From NCBI RefSeq assembly GCF_006345805.1, contig NW_021832663.1:1-30003 (forward strand): a DNA stretch of 30,003 nucleotides. Direction: 5' to 3'. The position numbers and the translations under genes are program-made. The stretch comes from Octopus sinensis (taxonomy: Eukaryota). Position 1 is the first letter of the stretch. Each line of letters begins with the position of its first letter. The notes beneath the pieces were generated by a model that worked only from the letters and a program-made list of their open reading frames with translations, was not told where the DNA came from and did not search any database. Below are positions 1,860-30,003 of the stretch, piece after piece.

Positions 1860-2128
1860 GTTTTTGTAGCACAATTTTAAAAGATCCGTGAGAATGGCTT
1901 TGCTATTCTCGTGCCTGCCCAAGTGTCTTGTGAAGGCATTAACTAATTAAAAATATTCGGTCTGTTAGATATTATATTAAAAGTAACCTTTCTTCACGAA
2001 AAGCTCGAAAATGGCCGATAATGCGAACTTTACTCCTCGTTTCGATAAAATAGTAGACGGCAAGCAAAATCAAGTCACATTAATTTTCTTATTTCGTAAT
2101 AAAACCTTTCTTTTAATTAAATAAAATA
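1860..2128 (+). mobile_element. Buster-type hAT transposase C-terminal relic (left part of a hAT split by the LINE)
   Basis: 2035-2083 reads PRFDKIVDGKQNQ/SH* with one frameshift, matching the Buster/ZBED5/FAM200 C-terminus (PRFDKL...KQ..SH*). An ILVP....CE motif lies near 1905-1935. Confidence 0.55.
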
Positions 2129-5100
2129 CATCACATCACAATCAGCCGAAACTACCTCACACGCCTCTGGCCTTAACAAAAAAGGGCAAACAAAATCTTT
2201 CAGAGAACAAGCAAATACTCTCATGAATCACTATGCGAAGATCAGTCACATGAAGATGGATAAAGACAACCGTTGCCGAAAATTTAAACTCGACAAAAAC
2301 TTCCCCTCTCCAGAAATCACAATATCGATTTCTGAAATAAGCCAACTCATCAAAAACGCTAAGAATTCTCACGCTTGTGGACCCGACGGTTTTTGCATAT
2401 ACCATCTGAAAAATCTTGGCCAAAATGGGTTGATTGCACTATCGGATATATTCAAAACATCGCTAAACTCAGGTCTAATACCTATGGTCTAGAAAAAATT
2501 TATTATAATTCCGATTTTGAAGCCCAATAAGGACCCCTGCGACCCCGCCTCGTTCAGGCCAATCTCACTTATCTCTGTCATATTAAAAATCCTAGAAAAA
2601 TTTGTCCTGAAATCAATTTACCCTTTCCTCACTTTCTCAAAGTCACAACATGGTTTCCGACCACAGCACTCAACAACAACACATCTATATACCCTAACGA
2701 GATTCATTGCAGACGGATTCAACAACTACTCTCCTCCCCAACGAACAATTCTGGCATCGATTGATATCAGCAAAGCGTTTGACCGGACTTCGCGTCATGT
2801 CCTAAGCTCAAAAATCTGCTCTTCTCCTATCCCTCATCGTCTGAAAATATGGCTATGTAGTTTCTTACCTGGTAGACTGGCTCAGACCAAATTCGGGTCA
2901 AAAAATTCCCGGTTTCGCTACTTACCTAATGGAGTACCTCAAGGCTCCTGTCTTTCTCCAGCCCTTTTCAACCTACACCTCAGTGATATGCCAACAAGCT
3001 CAGAAACACTACTCCTCTCTTACGCTGACGATCTTGCGTTCGCTTCCCGACACAAGATCATTAACACAGCGACTAGCTCACTTCAAACTCAACTTGACTC
3101 CCTAACCAAATGGCTAACATCTAACCATATGACTCCTTCAGCATCCAAATCATCTGTCAGGTTTTTACCTCTGATAACGACAATTCAACTTAAACCCACC
3201 CTCTATGTGGCCGGTGAAAGAATTCCTGTTGTAAAAAACCCAAAAATCCTTGGTATCGTATTCGATCAACGCCTTTCTTTTACACAACATGTAAAGTTCA
3301 TTTCCACCAAAGTCAAACGCAGGCTGAACGCATTATGTGCCTTATCAGGACAATCTTATGGCCAAGCCAAAGAATGCCTCGCTCTGGTCCACAGACAATT
3401 TGTCAGAACATCAATGAACTATGGTAGTCCGGCTTGGTCATGAAACCTCTCTCCATCAAATCTCCAAAAACTACAAAGAATCCAAAACTCAGGCCTCCGT
3501 ACAATAACTGGCTGCCTAGCCTCCACTTCCATCGATCATCTTCATTGGGAATCTTGTATCCTTCCGTTCGAAGACCATTGGAGATGAGAGGACTTCAATT
3601 CCTCTACGAAATACAGAATATCTCATCCATGCCACAAAATCTCTATCTCAAAACAAAAACATATTATCACTACAGTGGGCGCAAAAAAAATCCGGTTTTC
3701 TAATTTCTCTATTTTTTTATATTGTGCGATATAATATTTTTTTTTAATCTTAAATTTTAGTGAAAAGTAACTCTTATTTTTTTATTTTGATTATTTTCAT
3801 TATTTTTTTCAAGAGATATTTCCAATTAAATTTACAATGCGCAAAAAAAACCCGGTTTTTTAAAAAAATGTCAAATTAATATTTAATATGCCGTCCTTTA
3901 GCCATAAAAACATCGTACACCCTTCTCGGCATGCTGTTTATGAGTTTCTGTATTAGATCTTTCGGCATATTTTCCCAAATTTCGATAATTTTATCTTTCA
4001 GCTCATGCATATTTTTTGAGGATTTTCGTACAATTTACTTTTAATATATGCCCAAAGATGTTCTATTGGATTTAAATCTGGCGATTGCGGTGCCCAATCC
4101 AATAGTTTGACGCTTCTTTCGGCAAAGAAATCTTTCGTGATCTTTGATGTGTGTGGAGGAGCCATGTCTTGTTGGAATATGAATTCATTCAAGCACATTT
4201 TCGCAGCGGACTCCCACAGATTATTTGATAATGTTCACATAAGTTGCTGAGTTCATAGTTCCATTTATAAATACTAGATTGCCTACTCCATAATACCCGA
4301 AACATCCCCACACCATTATTTTTCCCCCTCCAAATTTAACAGTTGGAGATAAGTGCGATTTTTCTAGACGTGTGTTGTTTTTCCTATAACAAAATTCCTT
4401 TTTTTTGTGATTAAAAATTTCGAAACAGCATTCATCACTAAAAATAGTTGATTTCCATGACGTCATATTCAGTGCGATAAATTTTTTTGACAAGGAATAT
4501 CGTTTTTCGATATTAATTTTAGACAGATACGGTTTTTTTTGACACACACGTGAATATATTTCCTTTTGTTTCAGATAATTCCCAATTGTTCGTTTTGAGA
4601 CGATTTTTCCTGTCAAAGAATGAAGATCCTTTGACAGGCAACGGGAAGATTTTTTCGGATTGTCAGAAACAAGCGTCAATAAAGTATTTATATCATCATT
4701 ATTTAATGTCCTAGGTCTTCCAGAACCGGACAGTCTCTGTGTTGTTCCATATTTTTTTTATTTACGTATGTAATCTCCCACTGTTGATCTGGGAATTTCT
4801 ACTTCTTCTGAAATTTGTTTATATGTCCAATTAAGGAAATAAAGTTGAATAATTTGTCCTTTCACAATTTCTGAAATACACGACATCCAACAACAACAAA
4901 AATGACAACAATTTCAAATTTTGAGAATAAAAGACTCAATAATTAAAAAACCGAGTTTTTTTTGCGCATTTTAAAATTAAATTCAAGATATCTCTATGAA
5001 AAATAAAAAAATACTTAAAATTAAAAACATACTCGATTTACATTTCAAAATGATACTAAATTAAAAAAAAATAATATAAAATTTATATTGAAAAATTCGA

Positions 5101-5545
5101 AAAATAAGAAAACCGGATTTTTTTTGCGCCCACTGTACTCTAGCCGATCAATGCAGACCTCTCTCAAAAATACTCTTAACGAACAATGGGAAAACTGGGA
5201 AGAAATTAATTCACGATTACTTCTCAACTCGTGCTATCAGGATTCTTAAAAATAACAAACTCCTCGATTCTCCTCCGCCACCAGTCCATCCTTCAGAGCA
5301 ATCACTCGACAGGTACTTCCGTGTCCAGCTTGCACGACTTTGCTCTGGACATCATCCACTCTTTTTCGAAACACTCCGCACCCTCGCCCCTGAAGACCTT
5401 TTTTCCTGTCCTGGGCCGCCTCACCAGTCGCCACCTATTGGGATTCGGGATCTCTGGGAGCGCCCGATCGCCGCTGTCCGCTACCTGATTGCAGCCGGCT
5501 TCCTACATGCTAGAGAAGCCGGGGTAACTAACTAACTAACTAAAA
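2129..5545 (+). mobile_element. 5'-truncated non-LTR retrotransposon (jockey/I-group-like RT), interrupted by a Tc1 at 3673-5135
   Basis: ORF 2223-2492 (ACGPDGF) and ORF 2517-3443 contain FRPISL, QHGFRPQHST, DISKAFD, GVPQGSCLSPALFN and YADD. The C-terminal region resumes after 5137 (NKLLDSPPPPVHPSEQSL...QLARLCSGHHP...DLWERP). The 3' tail is (TAAC)4TAA at 5525-5543. Candidate TSD is aaaata (2123-2128 / 5546-5551). Confidence 0.9.
3673..5135 (-). mobile_element. Full-length Tc1 transposon (DD34E) with IR-DR type long imperfect TIRs; transposase pseudogenised
   Basis: TA|cagtgggcgcaaaaaaaatccggttttc at 3671-3700 and its inverse ending ...gcgcccactg|TA at 5135-5137. Inner direct repeats are at ~3839-3862 and ~4947-4967. 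The transposase runs 4886->3876 with a stop and frameshifts; motifs are FSDECCFEIF and FQQDMAPPH, with 34 residues from D to the E of SPDLNPIE. Confidence 0.95.
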
Positions 5546-5621
5546 AAAATATTTCTGTGCAGCACGCGGATAGTCTTAATCATCGATTTGGCCCTTGTGC
5601 TCCAATGGTTGAGAAGCCCTG
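5546..5621 (+). mobile_element. hAT (Buster/Charlie-like) right terminus remnant
   Basis: Ends ccaatggttgagaagccctg (reverse complement cagggcttctcaaccattgg, a typical hAT TIR). It is followed by atttaact, an 8-mer with central TA as expected for a Buster TSD. Confidence 0.65.
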
Positions 5622-5712
5622 ATTTAACTCTCGATTAGATGAGCCTAAAGAAATAAAAAAAATGAGTTAAGATCAAGTCATTAATAATAATTTAAACAAA
5701 ATTTGCGCAGCC

Positions 5713-6440
5713 TTATGCAGCAGGAGCTGCTTGTGGAGCTAACTTTTTGTTTTTTTCTTCTGATAGCAGTACGAGATCTTTCTTAATATGCATCGTTTCT
5801 TTCAGCTATAAATTATTTTGTCCCTACTTTTCTTCTGAGTCTGCATCAAACTCTTCTTTTTTGATTTTTATAAAAAAATTTTGGTAATTTTTATTGTTTT
5901 GAACATGCAGGTTGGAGTTTCTTTTAGGGTGTTCATATAGGGTTCGGAAGTTATGAGCTTTTCTTGCAGATTTTTTTGTAGTAGCGTATCATCTTACCAC
6001 AATGGAAGGGGTGGATATCGAAAGATTATCCTCGAAATTCGGTGAAATCTCATCGTTTTTTAGTGAAAATTTTGCACGAGACTCTCCGATATCTGCTTCT
6101 GTAAGGCCTCCTTGAACTGCTATATCGACTTTAGTTCCGGTTACTGTCGATCACAAAATTACATAGGCATTGAATATTTCCATTGCTCCCTTTAATTGAA
6201 ACGGCAATTGATAAAAAGACCTGTGACTGCGACAGCTTGGGGGAAAATCCATCCAGCATTGACTCTAAAATCGAAAACGAGGTCTTTTAACCAGGGTTCT
6301 TCTTTCATCTCTTCAACTACTTGCTTAAAGTCCGCTTCAGAAGAGTAAGTGGGGTCTTGATAGAATAAAAAGAGACTGATGTGACCAATCACGCCATCAT
6401 CATAAGGAACGGTTTCTGATTCAAAACTTGTTTTTTTTTA
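5713..6440 (-). pseudogene. tsp: Chlamydial-type tail-specific protease (Tsp/Prc, peptidase S41) pseudogene, C-terminal half with internal deletion
   Basis: Minus-strand translation across frameshifts: FESETVPYDDGVIGHISLFLFYQDPTYSSEADFKQVVEEMKEEPWLKDLVFDFRVNAGWIFPQAVAVTGLFI / IAVSIKGSNGNIQCL / GTKVDIAVQGGLTEADIGESRAKFSLKNDEISPNFEDNLS / QKNLQEKL...EPYMNTLK / VQNNKNYQNFFIKIKKEEFDADSEEK*GQNNL*LKETMHIKKDLVLL...APAA* (stop 5713-5715). These blocks follow chlamydial Tsp (EPYGDGVIGKITLHSFY; DLRENxGG...QAVxVTGLF; NKNYQNFLK; GQNDLQL). Confidence 0.85.
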
Positions 6441-6764
6441 AAAAAATTTTTCACAAATAATTTCTTTTAAGTTGTCTTTTAGAATGTTATGTTCACAAGC
6501 CGCGTGGAACTTGTTAAATCTATGATATAAGTATCTGGGAGTACTTGAGAGTTCAGCTAGAAAAATCAAAAAATCCGACATTCTGAAAATAATTCTTGAA
6601 AATAGATCGATTTCAAATTCAATTTTTTGTAATAATTAGATATCTAAAAGGCTTAGAATATAAAAACATGCCAATTCCAGCGTCTATTAACCTGTAATAA
6701 TCAAAATTAGTTGTGAGTACACTTTTATACATGGTTTTTTTTGAATTGAGGATGATATAATTTG

Positions 6765-6950
6765 ATGGATATTGAAAATACAAAGGTTACTTCTGCATTT
6801 ACGCATGAGCCTCCAAAAAAATTGTTTCGATCACTCAAGCAGCTTTTATAAACGGTGTCACACGGAAAGCGATTTATGTTGCGATTAAGAAAAAGAAGCT
6901 GAGACTACAATAAGATGCGACTCATTTGACAGTCAAATTAGATGATCTAG
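6765..6950 (+). pseudogene. euo: Chlamydial EUO (early upstream ORF) DNA-binding repressor pseudogene, N-terminal HTH only
   Basis: ATG 6765 gives MDIENTKVTSAFTHEPPKK. After a 1-nt frameshift in the A7 run (6815-6821) it reads IVSITQAAFINGVTRKAIYVAIKKKKLRLQ*DATHLTVKLDDL. C. trachomatis EUO has RVSITQAAKLHNVTRQAIYVAIKQKKLKASK-TTRWEIDLQDL. A GAGGA SD-like motif is at 6748-6752. Confidence 0.92.
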
Positions 6951-6952
6951 GT

Positions 6953-7300
6953 GCATCAGTGATCATTGTTAGAGATGATGTCGCTCTGTTAGGTACATAA
7001 TAAAGCGTGTGCCTACCAATCATTTTTAGGAATTCAATCAAAAAATAAGTCCCTGTAATGCCATCGACATCATTGTCACCGTATATGACGATCGTTTCTT
7101 TTCGCTCAATGGCTTGCATCATCCGATAGACTGCAATATCCATATCTAGAAATTGATCTGCCACCACTAAATTTGGTATTTTTGCATAAATGTATTTGCA
7201 GATCACTTCGAAAGACTGAGATCCTCTAGAAACAGAAACCTGAGCCTTTACCGGATGGATATTGAATTTTTTTAATAGAATCACACCATTCCGGTGAATA
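6953..7300 (-). pseudogene. recJ: RecJ ssDNA exonuclease pseudogene, N-terminal ~115 codons, chlamydial type
   Basis: KKFNIHPVKAQVSVSRGSQSFEVICKYIYAKIPNL...FLDMDIAVYRMMQAIERKETIVIYGDNDVDGITGTYFLIEFLKMIG...YYVPNR contains RecJ/DHH motif I (YGDxDxDG). The IHPxxAQxxxSRG N-terminus is typical of chlamydial RecJ. It is truncated before the DHH motif. Confidence 0.9.
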
Positions 7301-7334
7301 GATAGAATAGACTCAAAGAGGAATAGACTCAAGG

Positions 7335-7460
7335 AGTTCGTCCACATGAGCTCAATGTCTTCATGAATGCGATCAATAGTCGAATATCATTCAAAGAATA
7401 ACATTGATCGTCATCCATCTGCCAATAAATGAGTATGGAAGCTGAAACTGTTATGTTTTA
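7335..7460 (-). pseudogene. secF: SecF portion of secDF, short frameshifted fragment
   Basis: Across frameshifts it reads IGRWMTI..YSLNDI..DRIHEDIELM, matching the SecF TM4-5 motif IGALMTxxGYSLNDTIIxFDRIRED. It lies immediately upstream of recJ on the same strand, as secDF does in Chlamydiae. Confidence 0.7.
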
Positions 7461-7478
7461 GAAAGTAACAGAATAAAA

Positions 7479-7595
7479 ATGAATAATTCAAGAATTCTGT
7501 GTTTAAATAAGAACTACATATGGACAACTCAAGTCATTCCGAATTTTAATATTGAATATTTACCACCATACTCTCCTGTCATGAATCCCATAGAG
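7479..7595 (+). mobile_element. IS630/Tc1-superfamily DDE transposase fragment
   Basis: MNNSRI...IEYLPPYSPVMNPIE resembles MDNARIH...LPPYSPxLNPIE. It is cut off by the hAT end at 7596. Confidence 0.65.
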
Positions 7596-7810
7596 CAGTG
7601 TTTCTTAACCGTGTGGTCCTCAGAAATATGTTTAGGTCAATTAATTTTTATCAATATGGATTTACCAAATATGCTGGATCTGAAAACGTCTTTAAAGCGC
7701 AATGCATGATATGCGACGTCATAATGGGAAACAACTCGTTGAAGCTGTCACAATTAAAAAGACATAAGGAAACAAATCACCCACAAAATGCTGACACTGT
7801 CGAAAGGTAA
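7596..7810 (+). mobile_element. Buster-type hAT left terminus plus N-terminal BED-like transposase fragment
   Basis: TIR cagtgtttcttaacc starts at 7596, preceded by 8-mer ccaTAgag. The coding relic YQYGFT...KAQCMICDVIMGNNSLKLSQLKRHKETNHP matches the ZBED5/FAM200-type N-terminus. The right end was not found. Confidence 0.8.
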
Positions 7811-16496: not shown

Positions 16497-17477
16497 TCAA
16501 ATTATATTCCCATTAAGCGCAAGTTCGGATTCAACCGCAGATCTCAAATTTGAGGAAATCGAATGGGGAAACACAATATCAAAACGAACTTTCAAAAATC
16601 CTAGCTGCGAGGGGGATTTAACATAAGGAAGTCCCTCATTAGCAATCTTATAATCAGAATCAGGATTCACCGGAGAATGAAGAACCACTGATATTTTTCG
16701 CCCTCCCAACAAAGGAACAGTAATAGGCCGACCCAACAGTGCATCATACAGGGATATTTTCAATACATAAATCAAATTCTCCCCCTCACGTTTAAAAAGA
16801 GGATGAGGCTTGTCGCATATTTCAAAAACTATATTTGCAGGCAATCTCTGCGGGTTGATATCATCCCCAGCTCCCTCAAATGTAATTTTGGTCCCTGCCT
16901 TCCATCCAGGCTTTATTTTAATATCATAAATCTTCTCCTGCTGTACGCAGGAACCGTTCACTAGACATTTCCTCATGACTTTGACGTGCTTTGTTGTGCC
17001 AGTTTTTATGTCTTCCAGCGAAACTTGTAGTCGCTGCAACAAATCGGGATCTCTCTGCTTCCTTTGCATTGAAGGTCCACGATGACCAAATGAAGCTCCA
17101 AAAGGGCCTCCAAAAGGGCCACCAAAAGGACTAAATGTACTTCCATTTTCAAACATAGAAAAAGGATCATCCCCTCCAAAAAAACTACTAAACATGCTAA
17201 AAGCATCCCCAGTTGAGAAATGCGCTCCAAATCCATTGGCTTGACCACCACAAGAGTTTTTAAGTCCTTCTTCTCCATACTGGTCGTATATAGCTCTCTT
17301 ATTTTTATCAGAAAGCACACTGAAGGCTTCAGACACAGCCTTGAACTTCTCTTCGGCGTCAGGAGATTTATTTTTGTCAGGATGAAACTTGAGTGCCATT
17401 TTTTTGTACGCTTTCTTCAGCTGATCATCGTTAGCATCACGAGAAACACCAAGAATCTTATAATAATCAGCACCCAT
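16497..17477 (-). CDS. DNAJB: Class II Hsp40 / DnaJ subfamily B (DNAJB1/4/5-like), intronless, 326 aa
   Basis: J-domain with HPD ([16 protein letters not shown]), G/F-rich linker with [11 protein letters not shown], and C-terminal domain [15 protein letters not shown]...[10 protein letters not shown]...EGLP. Confidence 0.95.
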
Positions 17478-18040
17478 TGATATGTACGAAATTGCGCAAC
17501 AACAAAAGTATATTAATTAAATGTAGACTAGAACATTCCAGAACGTTCCAACAGACGCTATTTTTAAATCAATTAATATACACTTTTAACAATTCGTTTT
17601 AATTTAATAAAAACCGTTAATAAATCCTATCCTCGGGTCATGCTAATTAATTAAAACTTTATTTGGTGTTTAATAATAATTTGAAGAATGGAATAAAATT
17701 CATGTTGAAAAAAAAAAGTTAATAAATTGATACAGATTATTCAATTCCATAGTGCTAAAATGTTTATTTTGAATCTATTTAGAGCTTTTTATTGTTTTTG
17801 TGATTTTTTTGACCTCAATGTTTGTCACAGGTATTTGTAGCTAAAACTATAGCTTTTTATGCATGATCACAAGTAGCAGAGTTTTACATTTGAAGTGTAT
17901 TTCTGCGCAATAAGGAGTTTTAAATTAATTTTTGAATCGATCTTTATGATATTTACTATTTTTTAATCCTTAACTATCATAAAAATAGTTTTTGATATTT
18001 TACTATAAATTCTTATTTTATTTAAATAAAATTAATAGTA

Positions 18041-19774
18041 TCAAATTTGTACGCATTGAATTACTCCATATTCGAGAAGAAGAGAGAATAAAATAAATAT
18101 AACATATCCAAACATCATTGTAAGCCCAAGAAACTTTGACAATTTCCAACGGAAAGCAGCTATGATTAAAATTACACAGACAAGCATAGCCAATAACATT
18201 GAAATTGAGCAAACCAGTCCTTTACTATTGACACTGACAGGGCTTTTAAACACCATCCAATAGATAAGCCACGGAAATGGAAGTCTATCAAGTCAAAAAT
18301 AAATAAAACCCAACACAAGAATCAAAAATGTTACTCCCAACTGAACTAGAAACTGCCATGTCTCCAAACCCTTTTTTAGCCACGACATAGCTGCTTATCA
18401 AATCAGGAATGCTTGTTCCCGCTGCAAGGATTGTTAGTCCCATGACCTTATCATTATTGAGGATATTTCTAAACAAACTGTGCTCGGGATTCCCAGAGTC
18501 AAACCAATTTGATTGGCCCACCACACCATCAAATACGAGAATATACCAATCCAGATAATACTTCCTATAAACCCCAAAGGTGCAAATCTTTGTAATTTCT
18601 ACAATTTATTACTGATTTGTTACCTTTCTTTTAATATCTGGGACTGTTATGTAAAGTAGCACTGTTATTGGTAGTAAAACTATAAAGGCGGCTCTTTTTC
18701 CATTAGAACTAGGCCAAGATAAACTACGTTCTTCGCCATCATCGACAAATGTTACCTAAGAATTAAGTATTGGTGTATTTTTACTTGTTGAGGCTGATCC
18801 ACGAGGTCCAAGTCAATAGTGACCTCATTTTTTCTGATAGGTTCGGTTGGTTTCTAAATAAGGTTTAAAAATCAAACTTTGACTTCCTGGGTTTCCACTG
18901 CCATTTGATTCATCTTAGCCTTCACCACGTTAGCCATGCAAGGTTCTTGGAAAATGATAAAATTGAAAATAACTTTCATTCTTTGGTAAAATGTTGCTGG
19001 CTAAAAGTATCTGGTAAATTCCCCTTCTAAATTGACTCCTTCTTCCATGGATCACCGAGATCTAAGAAAGTCAAATCTGTTTAATTTCACCATAGAACAC
19101 TTCCTTTCGTCCTCGGGAGGAGGTTTTTGATGAAGAATTTTAGTTTTTACAAACATTTCCATAAAAGTATTAAACTTCATAAAAACCACATATAATATAT
19201 ACCAAACAAACAAAATTAAAGCTTCCCACCAATAAATAAACCCATCAAGGAAAAATGCCACCGTCATCACCAGAGATACTATATAGAATGTGACATCACG
19301 AAAGAGTGGCCACCAAGAAAGGACAAGCACAGTTCCACTTGCAAGAGTACAAATGCTGATCACAAACATCAAGTTAAACACAGCTGAGCCGACAATGGTT
19401 CCAATCCCCACATCATTCTTGGCTAGGAAGACACCAATGATAGAAGTAAATAATTCAGGAGCACTCCCGCCCGCTGCCATAAAAGTAGCCCCTGCCACAT
19501 CTTCGCTGATTTGTAGTTTTTTAGCGATTATTTCCAACGATGGAACAAAATATTCATCACAGACAATGGCCAAAGCAATAAACATGTAAATAACGCCAAT
19601 CAAGTGAAGGATAACTGCCCCTTTTCTTCTCTGACAATTATCAAATAAATCGACGGGGTAGTCCCCGTAAACGGGATCGGCACATCCGCCGGTGTTATTT
19701 ACTGCCAGCAATTTAAGGGCTTGTACGTCCTGGAAAAAGAAAAGTAGGCCAAGCAATATAATTTTTTTCACCAT
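18041..19774 (-). CDS. SLC24A: K+-dependent Na+/Ca2+ exchanger (NCKX, SLC24A1/2-like), multi-exon
   Basis: Signal peptide, then [19 protein letters not shown] and alpha-1 repeat [19 protein letters not shown]...[10 protein letters not shown]. Alpha-2 repeat: [15 protein letters not shown]...[16 protein letters not shown] 32-nt intron at 18447-18478 joins GIPST|VMGL. Stop at 18041-18043. Confidence 0.95.
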
Positions 19775-27921: not shown

Positions 27922-27982
27922 GTGTGTGTCTGTCTGTCTGTCTGTGTGTCTGTCTGTGTGTCTGTCTGTCTGTCTGTGTGTG
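27922..27982 (+). repeat. Compound (GTCT)n/(GT)n microsatellite
   Basis: gtgtgtgtctgtctgtctgtctgtgtgtctgtctgtgtgtctgtctgtctgtctgtgtgtg, read directly. Confidence 0.97.
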
Positions 27983-28005
27983 CACACCAACTTCAAATTG
28001 GCAAT

Positions 28006-28423
28006 ACGATGTCCTCGACTTACATGATGAGGTCCTTAAAACCTTCCCCCCAAAAAAAATTAAAAAAAATTTTTCTGCGTTTTGGTCAAAATGAACAACT
28101 ACGATGTCCTCGACTTACATGATGAGGTCCTTAAAACCTTCCCCCCAAAAAAATTAAAAAAAAATTTTCTGCATTTTGGTTAAAATGAACAACTACAATG
28201 TCCTCGACTTACATGATGAAGTCCTTAAAACCTTCCCCCCAAAAAAATTAAAAAAAAATTTTCTGCATTTTGGTTAAAATGAACAACTACAATGTCCTCG
28301 ACTTACATGATGAAGTCCTTAAAACCTTTCCCCCAAAAAATCAAAAAATTATTTTCTGCATTTTGATTAAAATGAACAACGCGAATGTCCTCGACATTCA
28401 TGATGAGGTCCATTAAAACCTTC
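28006..28423 (+). repeat. Tandem repeat, ~94-95 bp unit, ~4.4 copies
   Basis: Units start acgatgtcctcgacttacatgatgaggtcc at 28006, 28101, 28195, 28289 and ~28381; the last copy is partial and the most diverged. Confidence 0.97.
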
Positions 28424-28633
28424 AAGGCAAAAATCTCACGTATTAAGAATATCCTTGATGAAAACGACAGCGAGAATATTAACAATGATGAACTCCCAAT
28501 TATTCGCGATAAAGAAATTGAATTCATCCTATGTTTTTCTCTTTAAAATTAAATGCATATATCATTATCGACCATGAATCAAAATTAAAGCTATTATCAT
28601 ATTTGACTTTGACAGAATGTGCAATCACAGATT

Positions 28634-28838
28634 GCACGACTTTGAATAGAGTGTGCAATTAACAGATTTTGAAAAACCACTTTGATAGTTGAAACCACAT
28701 TAGCACAATCATTAACACAATTTACCACCAATTGACGCACGACCTTGAATAGAGTGTGCAATTAACAGATTTTGAAAAACACTTTGATAGTTGAAACCAC
28801 ATTAGCACAACCATTAACACAATTTACCACCAATTGAC
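28634..28838 (+). repeat. Tandem duplication, ~103 bp unit, 2 copies
   Basis: gcacgac(t/c)ttgaatagagtgtgcaattaacag...ccaccaattgac begins at 28634 and 28737; the copies are near-identical. Confidence 0.97.
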
Positions 28839-29195
28839 AGCGCAATCAGAAGAATTTGCGTAAAAATATTAACTATTTACTTGAGTTTTTCGTAAAGATA
28901 GAATTTATTTTCGGTATGCCTCTTTTCCTAAACTTTTTTATTATTCAAAAATAATTTTTTAAATAGATAACCGAAGGAGGAAAAACGAAGCTGAAGAAAA
29001 AACGGTCAGCTTAATAAGGTAATTAATTAAATTTTTTTTGTGTGTCGCTTTCTTGCCTGCCGCATTTCCGCCTGCCGTATCTCCCCCTGCCCCATTCCGC
29101 CAGTAAAAAATAAAAAAAGAAAAAAAAGGAAATTACAAAGGAAAAATGAAAAAATTAAATATAAAAAAAATAAACCACAAAAAATGAAAAAAAAG

Positions 29196-29384
29196 TTTGC
29201 AATGACAATAAACAAGGCCCAGGGACAGTCATTAAAGGTAGTTGGGTTATTTTTAGAGAGTGAGTGCTTTTCACATGGACAGCTGTATGTGGGATGCTCG
29301 AGGGTAGGCAGAAGAGAAAATTTATTCATATATGCCAAGGAAGGACGGACGACAAACATCGTTTATCAACAGGCGATAGAATAG
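29196..29384 (+). pseudogene. Helitron PIF1-like helicase C-terminal fragment
   Basis: FAMTINKAQGQSLKVVGLFLESECFSHGQLYVGCSRVG...NIVYQQAIE* contains helicase motifs V and VI of Helitron RepHel. Confidence 0.93.
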
Positions 29385-30003
29385 GGTTACATTAAACCAG
29401 GTAGTTTTATACATCTACATAAACTTATAGTTGTTTGATGAAACAGGCCCTCCGCAGGAGCTAGGTCGCGGTGAGCGAAGCGAGCTGCCGAGCTAGTAAC
29501 ATAATAAAATCTTTTGGGACAAACTATTTTTTAATAAAATGTCGCTAAATCGTTTCTTATAATGAATTATTTGTATTTCAAATTTAATGTCGAAAAATAA
29601 TCTGTGGTTTTAAATTTAAGATCCCAGTGGTCGTCCAGGATTGGTTGTGACGTATTAATATATTACTCTATTTATACATATTTTTAATAAATTTAAAATA
29701 AAAATAATATTGAATAAAAAGATTCTCTTAAATACTATCATCTTTGTTATTTATCACGTTGGATATAATTCTAATGAGTCCTCATAGTAACTAATTTTTT
29801 AGTGACTGAAAAAATGCAAGACTTCTGGGCAGATACTCTAAATACTAAAAAAATTGATTCATTGTCACTTGAAAATTGCAGCCATGTATTTTAAAAATAT
29901 ATTAATCTTAAAAAATTTATCAGTAAAATAACTATAAATTAGTTATTACTGGAATCCCTTCCAAAAATGGACCTTCTCGATGTAACTGTCGCTGTGCCAT
30001 TTT

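Follow-up and report, generated by a model that had tools for sequence, protein, structure and literature searches.

The window analysed here, the entire 30,003-bp unplaced contig NW_021832663.1 (C9134) of the Octopus sinensis assembly GCF_006345805.1, carries between positions 5699 and 7423 the remnants of four bacterial genes, tsp, euo, recJ and secDF, which were located by a six-frame reading of positions 5400-7800 combined with family scans (Table 1; C-numbers denote contigs of the same 2.72-Gb, 13,516-contig assembly). An earlier note on this DNA had described four decayed remnants, oriented tsp(-), euo(+), recJ(-) and secF(-), between eukaryotic transposons, with the tail of a long interspersed nuclear element (LINE) on the left and an IS630/Tc1 element on the right. 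This description was borne out: the limits of the remnants agree to within ~40 bases, stops, frameshifts or truncations occur in each of the four pieces, and the flanking elements are multi-copy repeats on unplaced contigs, the secF piece being weak in the window and clear in the sister copies described below. The E-values, together with four nucleotide blocks collinear with one bacterial chromosome, leave no room for chance similarity.

Table 1. Features of the window, with the nucleotide blocks that align to L014 (Simkania sp. metagenome-assembled genome (MAG) NZ_OZ244056.1, region 330-347 kb)
Feature	Window position	Strand	Nucleotide block: window; L014; identity	Remarks
Dispersed retroelement, 3' end	5092..5545	+		left flank; closes in (TAAC)4 and an A-run
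A+T-rich spacer between retroelement tail and chlamydial DNA	5546..5698	.		one weak repeat match (C9236, 78%)
Whole Simkania-like chlamydial fossil insert	5699..7423	.		4-5 collinear blocks, 70-77% nucleotide identity to NZ_OZ244056.1
tsp remnant, C-terminal part	5713..6144	-	5699-6143; 13650-13193; 72.9%	Simkania Tsp residues 513-658; stop codon 5713-5715
tsp remnant, middle part	6146..6464	-	6171-6464; 12923-12622; 70.5%	residues 323-431; one TAA and a frameshift
135-bp stretch replacing 1.1 kb of missing donor DNA	6465..6599	.		bases 6397-6521 common to the C7755 copy
Former tsp-euo intergenic region (euo promoter side)	6600..6764	+	6600-6950; 11514-11169; 77.3%	block shared with the euo remnant
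euo remnant	6765..6950	+	as above	residues 1-62 of 149; ATG at 6765; frameshift in A-run at ~6810; TAA stop; remainder deleted
recJ remnant	6952..7319	-	6953-7319; 8305-7937; 72.6%	residues about 10-130 of 576; one frameshift at ~7275
secDF remnant (SecF part)	~7340..7423	-	about 7340-7440; 7608-7480; weak	SecDF residues about 1400-1441 of 1523; over three frames
Short host repeat abutting the insert	7424..7494	.		also on C10277 and C8546, twice each, without chlamydial DNA
Tc1/IS630-like transposase remnant	7526..7595	+		Pfam DDE_3, E 3.5e-5; about ten other copies on unplaced contigs
Intronless DnaJ subfamily-B gene	16497..17516	-		DnaJ and DnaJ_C domains
NCKX-type Na/Ca exchanger gene	18041..19771	-		ultra-short GT-AG introns; whole protein E 1.4e-63

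The tsp gene survives in the window in two parts, residues 432-512 and 1-322 having been deleted. The chlamydia-type Tsp model NF051464 was the best model for all Tsp pieces, with general S41 models scoring much lower. Its matches to single stretches were at 6192-6437(-) (model positions 340-415, E 2e-22), 5989-6150(-) (positions 516-557, E 9e-9) and 5824-5988(-) (positions 573-621, E 1e-3); the C-terminal part, interrupted internally by one TGA and two TAG codons, was matched over positions 516-644 (E 1e-20) and the middle part over positions 329-415 (E 2.8e-19). Against Simkania, the C-terminal part gave 60% identity over 149 amino acids by tblastn and 72.9% over 443 bp by blastn, and the middle part gave 68% over 85 amino acids with a further 71% over 21 amino acids in a different frame. 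No alignment to the Simkania locus L014 was obtained for the stretch 6465-6599. The PDZ part of the Tsp model (positions about 240-320) also matched open frames on C12602 (four sites), C9445, C772, C9308, C7512 and C10654; these PDZ-only matches were rejected as chlamydial remnants, as they are stop-free eukaryotic PDZ-domain genes, many of them in tandem, on unplaced contigs.

Residues 18-62 of the euo piece are 76% identical over 45 amino acids (tblastn, E 7e-17) to a Simkania gene encoding a 149-residue double helix-turn-helix (HTH) protein, sited between rlmD and tsp. Homologues of this gene show 66-79% identity across chlamydial families and adjoin recJ in 59 of 80 loci. EUO itself is specific to Chlamydiales, with a 139-residue Protochlamydia orthologue, and is one of eight regulators with phylum-wide conservation (PMC1403754, PMC4652624). 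Neither a curated EUO model nor a database name or solved structure was found for the Simkania homologue, and its identification as an EUO orthologue is based on where it lies, how well it is conserved and what the literature describes. The recJ piece lies within a frame, 6922-7386(-), that is open for 154 codons and matches TIGR00644 at positions 2-95 (E 1.6e-20); Pfam DHH also passes its threshold, in keeping with an N-terminal DHH domain bearing the DxD/DHH motifs, and by tblastn it is 71% identical to Simkania RecJ over 109 amino acids (E 6e-45). Searches of public protein sets with the 154-residue frame returned no near-identical copy, the chlamydial RecJ fragments recovered reaching 55% identity at most, and among 1.8 billion proteins the matches were RecJ-type proteins at no more than 54%. 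Residues 131-576 of RecJ were deleted together with rlmD and the 3' part of euo (2.86 kb of donor DNA), and the piece, of which the first 130 residues alone remain, is a fragment and not a functional RecJ.

The secDF stretch was recognised in a four-way alignment of the window, C2591, C9947 and Simkania, in which it is homologous to residues about 1400-1441 (…MTIIGYSLNDTIIIFDRIRED…) of SecDF, the fused chlamydial type PRK12911. The FDRIRED motif of SecF reads IDRIHED in the window, where it is spread over three frames, and the window piece is not significant by tblastn when taken alone. The corresponding stretch of C9947 is 75.6% identical to Simkania secDF over 90 bp (blastn, E 8e-10), that of C9530 shows 79% amino-acid identity over 24 residues, the sister copies stand at 79-80%, and C10580 is also significant. 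An alternative assignment of ‘HEDIELMW’ at 7340-7365 to the RecJ N-terminus was rejected, the C9947 copy identifying it with the SecF motif. No further SecDF was found when both halves of the Simkania protein were compared with the whole assembly.

The origin of these pieces was examined by scanning the RecJ piece against one genome per bacterial species, which yielded 162 confirmed relatives. The best 80 of these behave as Chlamydiota, though a few record titles differ, with two Simkania sp. leading at 72% and 69% amino-acid identity. In L014 the genes secDF, recJ, rlmD, the euo-like HTH gene (on the opposite strand) and tsp are contiguous in this order, tsp and euo being direct neighbours and rlmD lying between euo and recJ. 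The C. trachomatis order given in the earlier note, tsp (CT441), crpA/omcB/omcA/gltX, euo (CT446), recJ (CT447) and secDF (CT448), differs; Simkania fits the fossil better because tsp and euo are adjacent in it and rlmD stands between euo and recJ. On this comparison ~6.2 kb of donor DNA is now represented by 1,725 bp, four deletions of about 0.33, 2.86, 1.1 and 0.27 kb having removed ~72% of the donor piece, and the amino-acid identity of the retained blocks to the Simkania MAG is 60-76%. In a maximum-likelihood tree of the concatenated pieces (IQ-TREE), four host copies form one group (SH-like approximate likelihood-ratio test, SH-aLRT, 91), nested in a clade labelled 97 with three Simkania sp. 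(L014, L015 and L036) in the Simkaniaceae part of the tree. Together, these comparisons place the donor in Simkaniaceae (Chlamydiota), not Chlamydiaceae; the Simkania MAG NZ_OZ244056.1 is its closest living relative, not the donor itself. In the MAG (GC 43%), rlmD (rumA; L014 9511-10840) is split into two overlapping open reading frames (ORFs), which may be a frameshift of the MAG or a real pseudogene, while the other genes of the region are intact.

Versions of the fossil with differing deletions occur at eight or more loci of the assembly, those outside the window lying on C2591, C9947, C7755, C12442, C12459, C9530 and C10580 (contigs of 13 to 854 kb). The C2591 version (group A1) is 95-99% identical to the window and has collinear flanks. 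In group A2, C9947 is 84-89% identical to the window, and C9530 and C10580, 95-97% identical to C9947, have a 2.6-kb deletion that leaves the start of recJ, secF and the right flank. The two versions of group B, on C12442 and C12459, share 98.4% identity, which falls to 77-80% against the window, and the C7755 version (group C) consists of rearranged tsp pieces. Group B retains rlmD residues 5-73, euo residues 18-75 and tsp residues 96-180 and 302-391, all absent from the window, whereas it is without the recJ and secF pieces that the window retains; since the groups hold complementary parts, all versions descend from a fuller ancestor. Five copies could be aligned with Simkania across the tsp-euo intergenic region, and the junctions euo|recJ, recJ|secF and secF|host repeat recur across copies at 77-98% identity. 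The right flank is common to A1 and A2 up to 7587, and A2 and B have a left flank in common at 73-78% identity, a divergence about that of the chlamydial part; this left flank is not recognisably chlamydial.

Two further observations concern these copies. C9947 carries, exactly at the euo|recJ deletion junction, an intact 404-residue hAT-like transposase ORF (C9947:23019-24233(+); L013 3520-4734), identified by eye and possibly part of a young or still active element. Positions 1-1979 of the window and C2591:1-1981 start from a common base and match at 99.3%; beyond them the two contigs differ by indels of transposon size (window 1980-2881 and 3674-5135), a pattern that fits haplotigs or sibling-species versions of a single locus.

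The differences between copies carry a record of when coding constraint ended. Between Simkania and the host copies, differences at codon positions 1/2/3 amount to 0.19/0.12/0.49, and this third-position excess is what purifying selection in bacteria leaves behind. Among the host copies themselves the values are 0.05/0.04/0.03, 0.15/0.10/0.05 and, for A versus B, 0.25/0.15/0.11. As the excess is seen against Simkania and not between host copies, the copies diverged after coding constraint had ended, i.e. after integration. The GC content of the insert is 35.2%, against 42.8% for the homologous Simkania blocks and 33.1% for the whole window, and relative to Simkania 171 differences run from G/C to A/T and 82 from A/T to G/C; the fossil has decayed neutrally since insertion, and its base composition is now near the A+T-rich level of the host. 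At assembly level the insert is continuous with eukaryotic DNA on both sides, the contigs are without gaps (no N), and neither tsp nor recJ is present in intact form in the 2.72-Gb assembly.

A second, larger fossil came to light when the assembly was searched for the ATP/ADP translocase (TLC) family, which is characteristic of chlamydiae and rickettsiae and had matches in 0 of 14 control genomes. The search revealed a pseudogene with many stops at C9489:41662-42993, whose amino-acid identity is 60% to the Simkania MAG NZ_OZ244056.1, 48-54% to other Simkaniaceae and 32-36% to other Chlamydiota. Around it lie six blocks, at C9489 36477-45147, whose contents include three hypothetical genes and a 2-hydroxyacid dehydrogenase remnant. 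They are collinear with a 22.9-kb stretch of Simkania (1,475,888-1,453,034), 1.1 Mb from the tsp-recJ region on the same chromosome. As the second fossil comes from elsewhere on the donor chromosome, transfer was not limited to the tsp-recJ piece. Positions 27958-29497 of the window and C9489:32425-34479 have overlapping repeat-like matches at 90-99.7%, probably a satellite or young transposon, and because young repeats up to 99.7% identical are common to C9489 and the window, both contigs belong to one genome.

At its left boundary, ~5699, homology of the insert to Simkania reaches 14 bases beyond the tsp stop, and at its right boundary chlamydial DNA stops about 7423. The spacer at 5546-5698 has no homology to the Simkania locus, and the LINE-type tail at 5300-5545 recurs at 85-99% identity on over 30 other contigs, none of them placed. 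The IS630/Tc1-like remnant of the right flank was rejected as a bacterial element, being a dispersed host repeat. The zinc-finger ORF at 7556-7810 matches Pfam zf-C2H2_12 weakly, and the hAT origin proposed for it is our reading, with no family match. Further to the left are two more ORFs, one for a reverse transcriptase (2493-3443) and one with a Tc1 HTH (4221-4757(-)).

The identity of the genome that carries the fossil is indicated by genes on the same contig. An NCKX-type exchanger gene 11 kb from the insert contains introns of 25, 32 and 25 nucleotides (18623-18599, 18478-18447 and 18309-18285), the removal of which gives an unbroken second Na_Ca_ex domain (positions 2-150 of 151 of the hidden Markov model); four more introns of 20-32 nucleotides, in the loop, are probably needed for a complete 513-residue frame. 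Among animals, introns this short are known from dicyemids and myxobolid myxozoans alone (PMC13644364). The renal sac of Octopus sinensis is home to Dicyema japonicum, whose LINE-rich genome measures 67.5 Mb with 49% repeats, and several dicyemid species can occupy one host (PMC6736024). The repeat matches of both flanks are all on unplaced contigs, none falling on C1-C30. The best matches of the DnaJB gene are 47-50% identical and all bilaterian, over many phyla, with no cephalopod, cnidarian or myxozoan among them; the same tool did list cephalopod proteins for COX1. The mitochondrial COX1 of the assembly is 100% identical to an Octopus vulgaris-complex sequence, and the octopus, taken as the host from this result, was dropped after the tiny introns and the confinement of the repeats to unplaced contigs had come to light. 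The unplaced contig C1425 holds at 413645-414982 a COX1 copy that scores the same as the mitochondrial contig C13516 and may be a recent nuclear copy or a mis-join. Because of the tiny introns, the flank repeats on unplaced contigs and a DnaJB without cephalopod relative, the contig is likely to derive from a dicyemid that was co-assembled with its octopus host and left unplaced.

Taken together, it is highly probable that the insert is a non-functional fossil, formed when 6.2 kb or more of a Simkania-like chromosome became part of an animal's germ-line nuclear DNA and then decayed. Along with the end of secDF, this piece would have contained recJ, rlmD, euo and tsp; a lysed intracellular bacterium may have released DNA that was end-joined into a chromosome break, as assumed for Wolbachia insertions. 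Four deletions, stops and frameshifts have since broken every gene, host transposons have landed beside the fossil and, in one copy, inside it, and the locus exists in several versions, each missing different parts. The host is most likely a dicyemid mesozoan of the octopus kidney whose contigs were co-assembled. The fossil shows no sign of function, and it bears witness to an earlier, hitherto undescribed intracellular association. One integration followed by duplication is favoured by the monophyly of the copies, the codon-position pattern and the partly shared flanks. The interpretation offered in the earlier note, of a single chlamydial fragment integrated into the host chromosome and decayed, is thus supported with four refinements, namely the donor family, the several loci, the second segment and the identity of the host. 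Its chlamydial origin agrees with the RecJ relatives and with the tree that places the pieces in Simkaniaceae, and its single donor fragment with blocks collinear with one Simkania chromosome. Integration and decay were upheld by the gapless contigs, the several diverged copies, the hAT element inside one of them and the neutral-looking divergence between them; the argument against contamination by a living bacterium held on the lack of any intact tsp or recJ in 2.7 Gb. The ‘animal-parasite-type’ nuclear genome looks right, given 25-32-nucleotide introns on the contig, and the search for other chlamydial fragments that the note had proposed returned versions at no fewer than eight loci, the window included, and the fossil on C9489. 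It is an evenly balanced proposition that dicyemids, or the present lineage among them, once carried, and may still carry, a Simkania-like chlamydia with access to the germ line, many pieces of whose genome would be scattered in the nuclear genome.

Other explanations were weighed against these data. That degraded or dying chlamydial DNA was misjoined to eukaryotic repeats in the assembly would suit a small, unplaced contig with junctions at assembly level, yet the same junctions recur at at least eight loci at 77-98% identity, the copies diverge without third-position excess, a eukaryotic transposase ORF sits inside one of them, and the assembly has neither N gaps at these loci nor an intact chlamydial tsp or recJ; such a chimera or contamination is close to refuted and must be regarded as extremely improbable. 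Takeover of part of the remnant by the host would find its best candidate in the recJ frame open over 154 codons, but C2591 and C9947 have interruptions in this stretch, RecJ residues 131-576 are missing, and substitutions between copies are without third-position bias, so that this explanation is hardly credible. It is rather unlikely that a persistent symbiont gave rise to several independent integrations of the same donor region: groups A and B are without a clear common flank and a second, unlinked donor region is present, as in the repeated transfers of Wolbachia, whereas the host copies are monophyletic, the A versus B differences of 0.25/0.15/0.11 are not those expected for divergence inside living bacteria, and flanks are held in common by A1 and A2 on the right and, in a non-chlamydial left flank (73-78%), by A2 and B. 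A real fossil residing in an unanchored, repeat-rich compartment of the octopus nuclear genome is unlikely. Such a location would accord with the octopus mitochondrion of the assembly, with the frequency of host repeats among the unplaced contigs of long-read assemblies and with the lack of a dicyemid COX1 in the assembly; it is opposed by the three validated introns of 25-32 nucleotides (probably seven in total), unheard of in cephalopods, by flank repeats that match unplaced contigs solely, and by the DnaJB gene without cephalopod relative.

Several points weigh against a single, neutrally decayed insertion in a dicyemid genome. The focal contig is a small 30-kb unplaced scaffold, with junctions known at assembly level. 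The counts of G/C-to-A/T differences are unrooted in their polarity. The Simkania euo-like gene receives generic HTH/excisionase matches alone from NCBIfam and Pfam, and its database name is ‘helix-turn-helix domain-containing protein’. Copies as close as 95-99% might represent haplotypes, or orthologues contributed by dicyemid species infecting the same host, instead of paralogues, and the copy number per genome is therefore uncertain; two near-simultaneous integrations from one donor are compatible with the same data. As to the host, no dicyemid COX1 turned up in the assembly, and the identification as a dicyemid draws on gene structure and context.

Within the searchable literature we found no report of chlamydial fossils in animal genomes, nor of chlamydiae with octopus, cephalopods or dicyemids. 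To our knowledge, the bacterial DNA fossils recorded in animals come almost entirely from Wolbachia and a handful of other arthropod and nematode symbionts, and we know of no natural hosts for most environmental chlamydiae. A multi-gene chlamydial fossil would therefore add a new donor phylum and, probably, a poorly known new host phylum, and it provides testable evidence for Simkania-like chlamydiae inside dicyemids or their close ancestors, which bears on the host range of marine chlamydiae. Should many pieces prove to be scattered in the nuclear genome, they would be the first widespread chlamydial DNA fossils in an animal and mark a new host group of Simkaniaceae, two segments being a small sample. 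In addition, the public octopus reference appears to include contigs of a kidney parasite, which can mislead gene catalogues and screens for horizontal transfer.

The fossil can be set beside other known systems. Chlamydial genes in Archaeplastida and amoebae are functional horizontal transfers (PMC2376095), which have the donor phylum and the ATP/ADP translocase family in common with the present case; those transfers are single genes, expressed and selected, whereas contiguous, non-functional chromosome debris is found here. In Octopus bimaculoides, 12 intact, expressed horizontally transferred genes have been reported, the text of the paper containing no chlamydial donor (PMC6011040); both cases concern bacterial sequences in a cephalopod genome project, although the present fossil is probably outside the cephalopod genome. 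The nuclear insertions of Wolbachia (nuwts) occur in insects and filarial nematodes and include ‘ghost’ fragments in species without the symbiont (PMC12693587). As in nuwts, a multi-gene chromosome piece of an obligate intracellular bacterium lies in an animal nuclear genome with the donor gene order kept, pseudogenised, shortened by deletions and interrupted by host transposons, as the record of a past association. Unlike nuwts, the fossil has no living donor known from the host or present in the assembly, its donor belongs to Chlamydiota (Simkaniaceae) and not to Alphaproteobacteria, and its host is probably a dicyemid rather than an arthropod or nematode.

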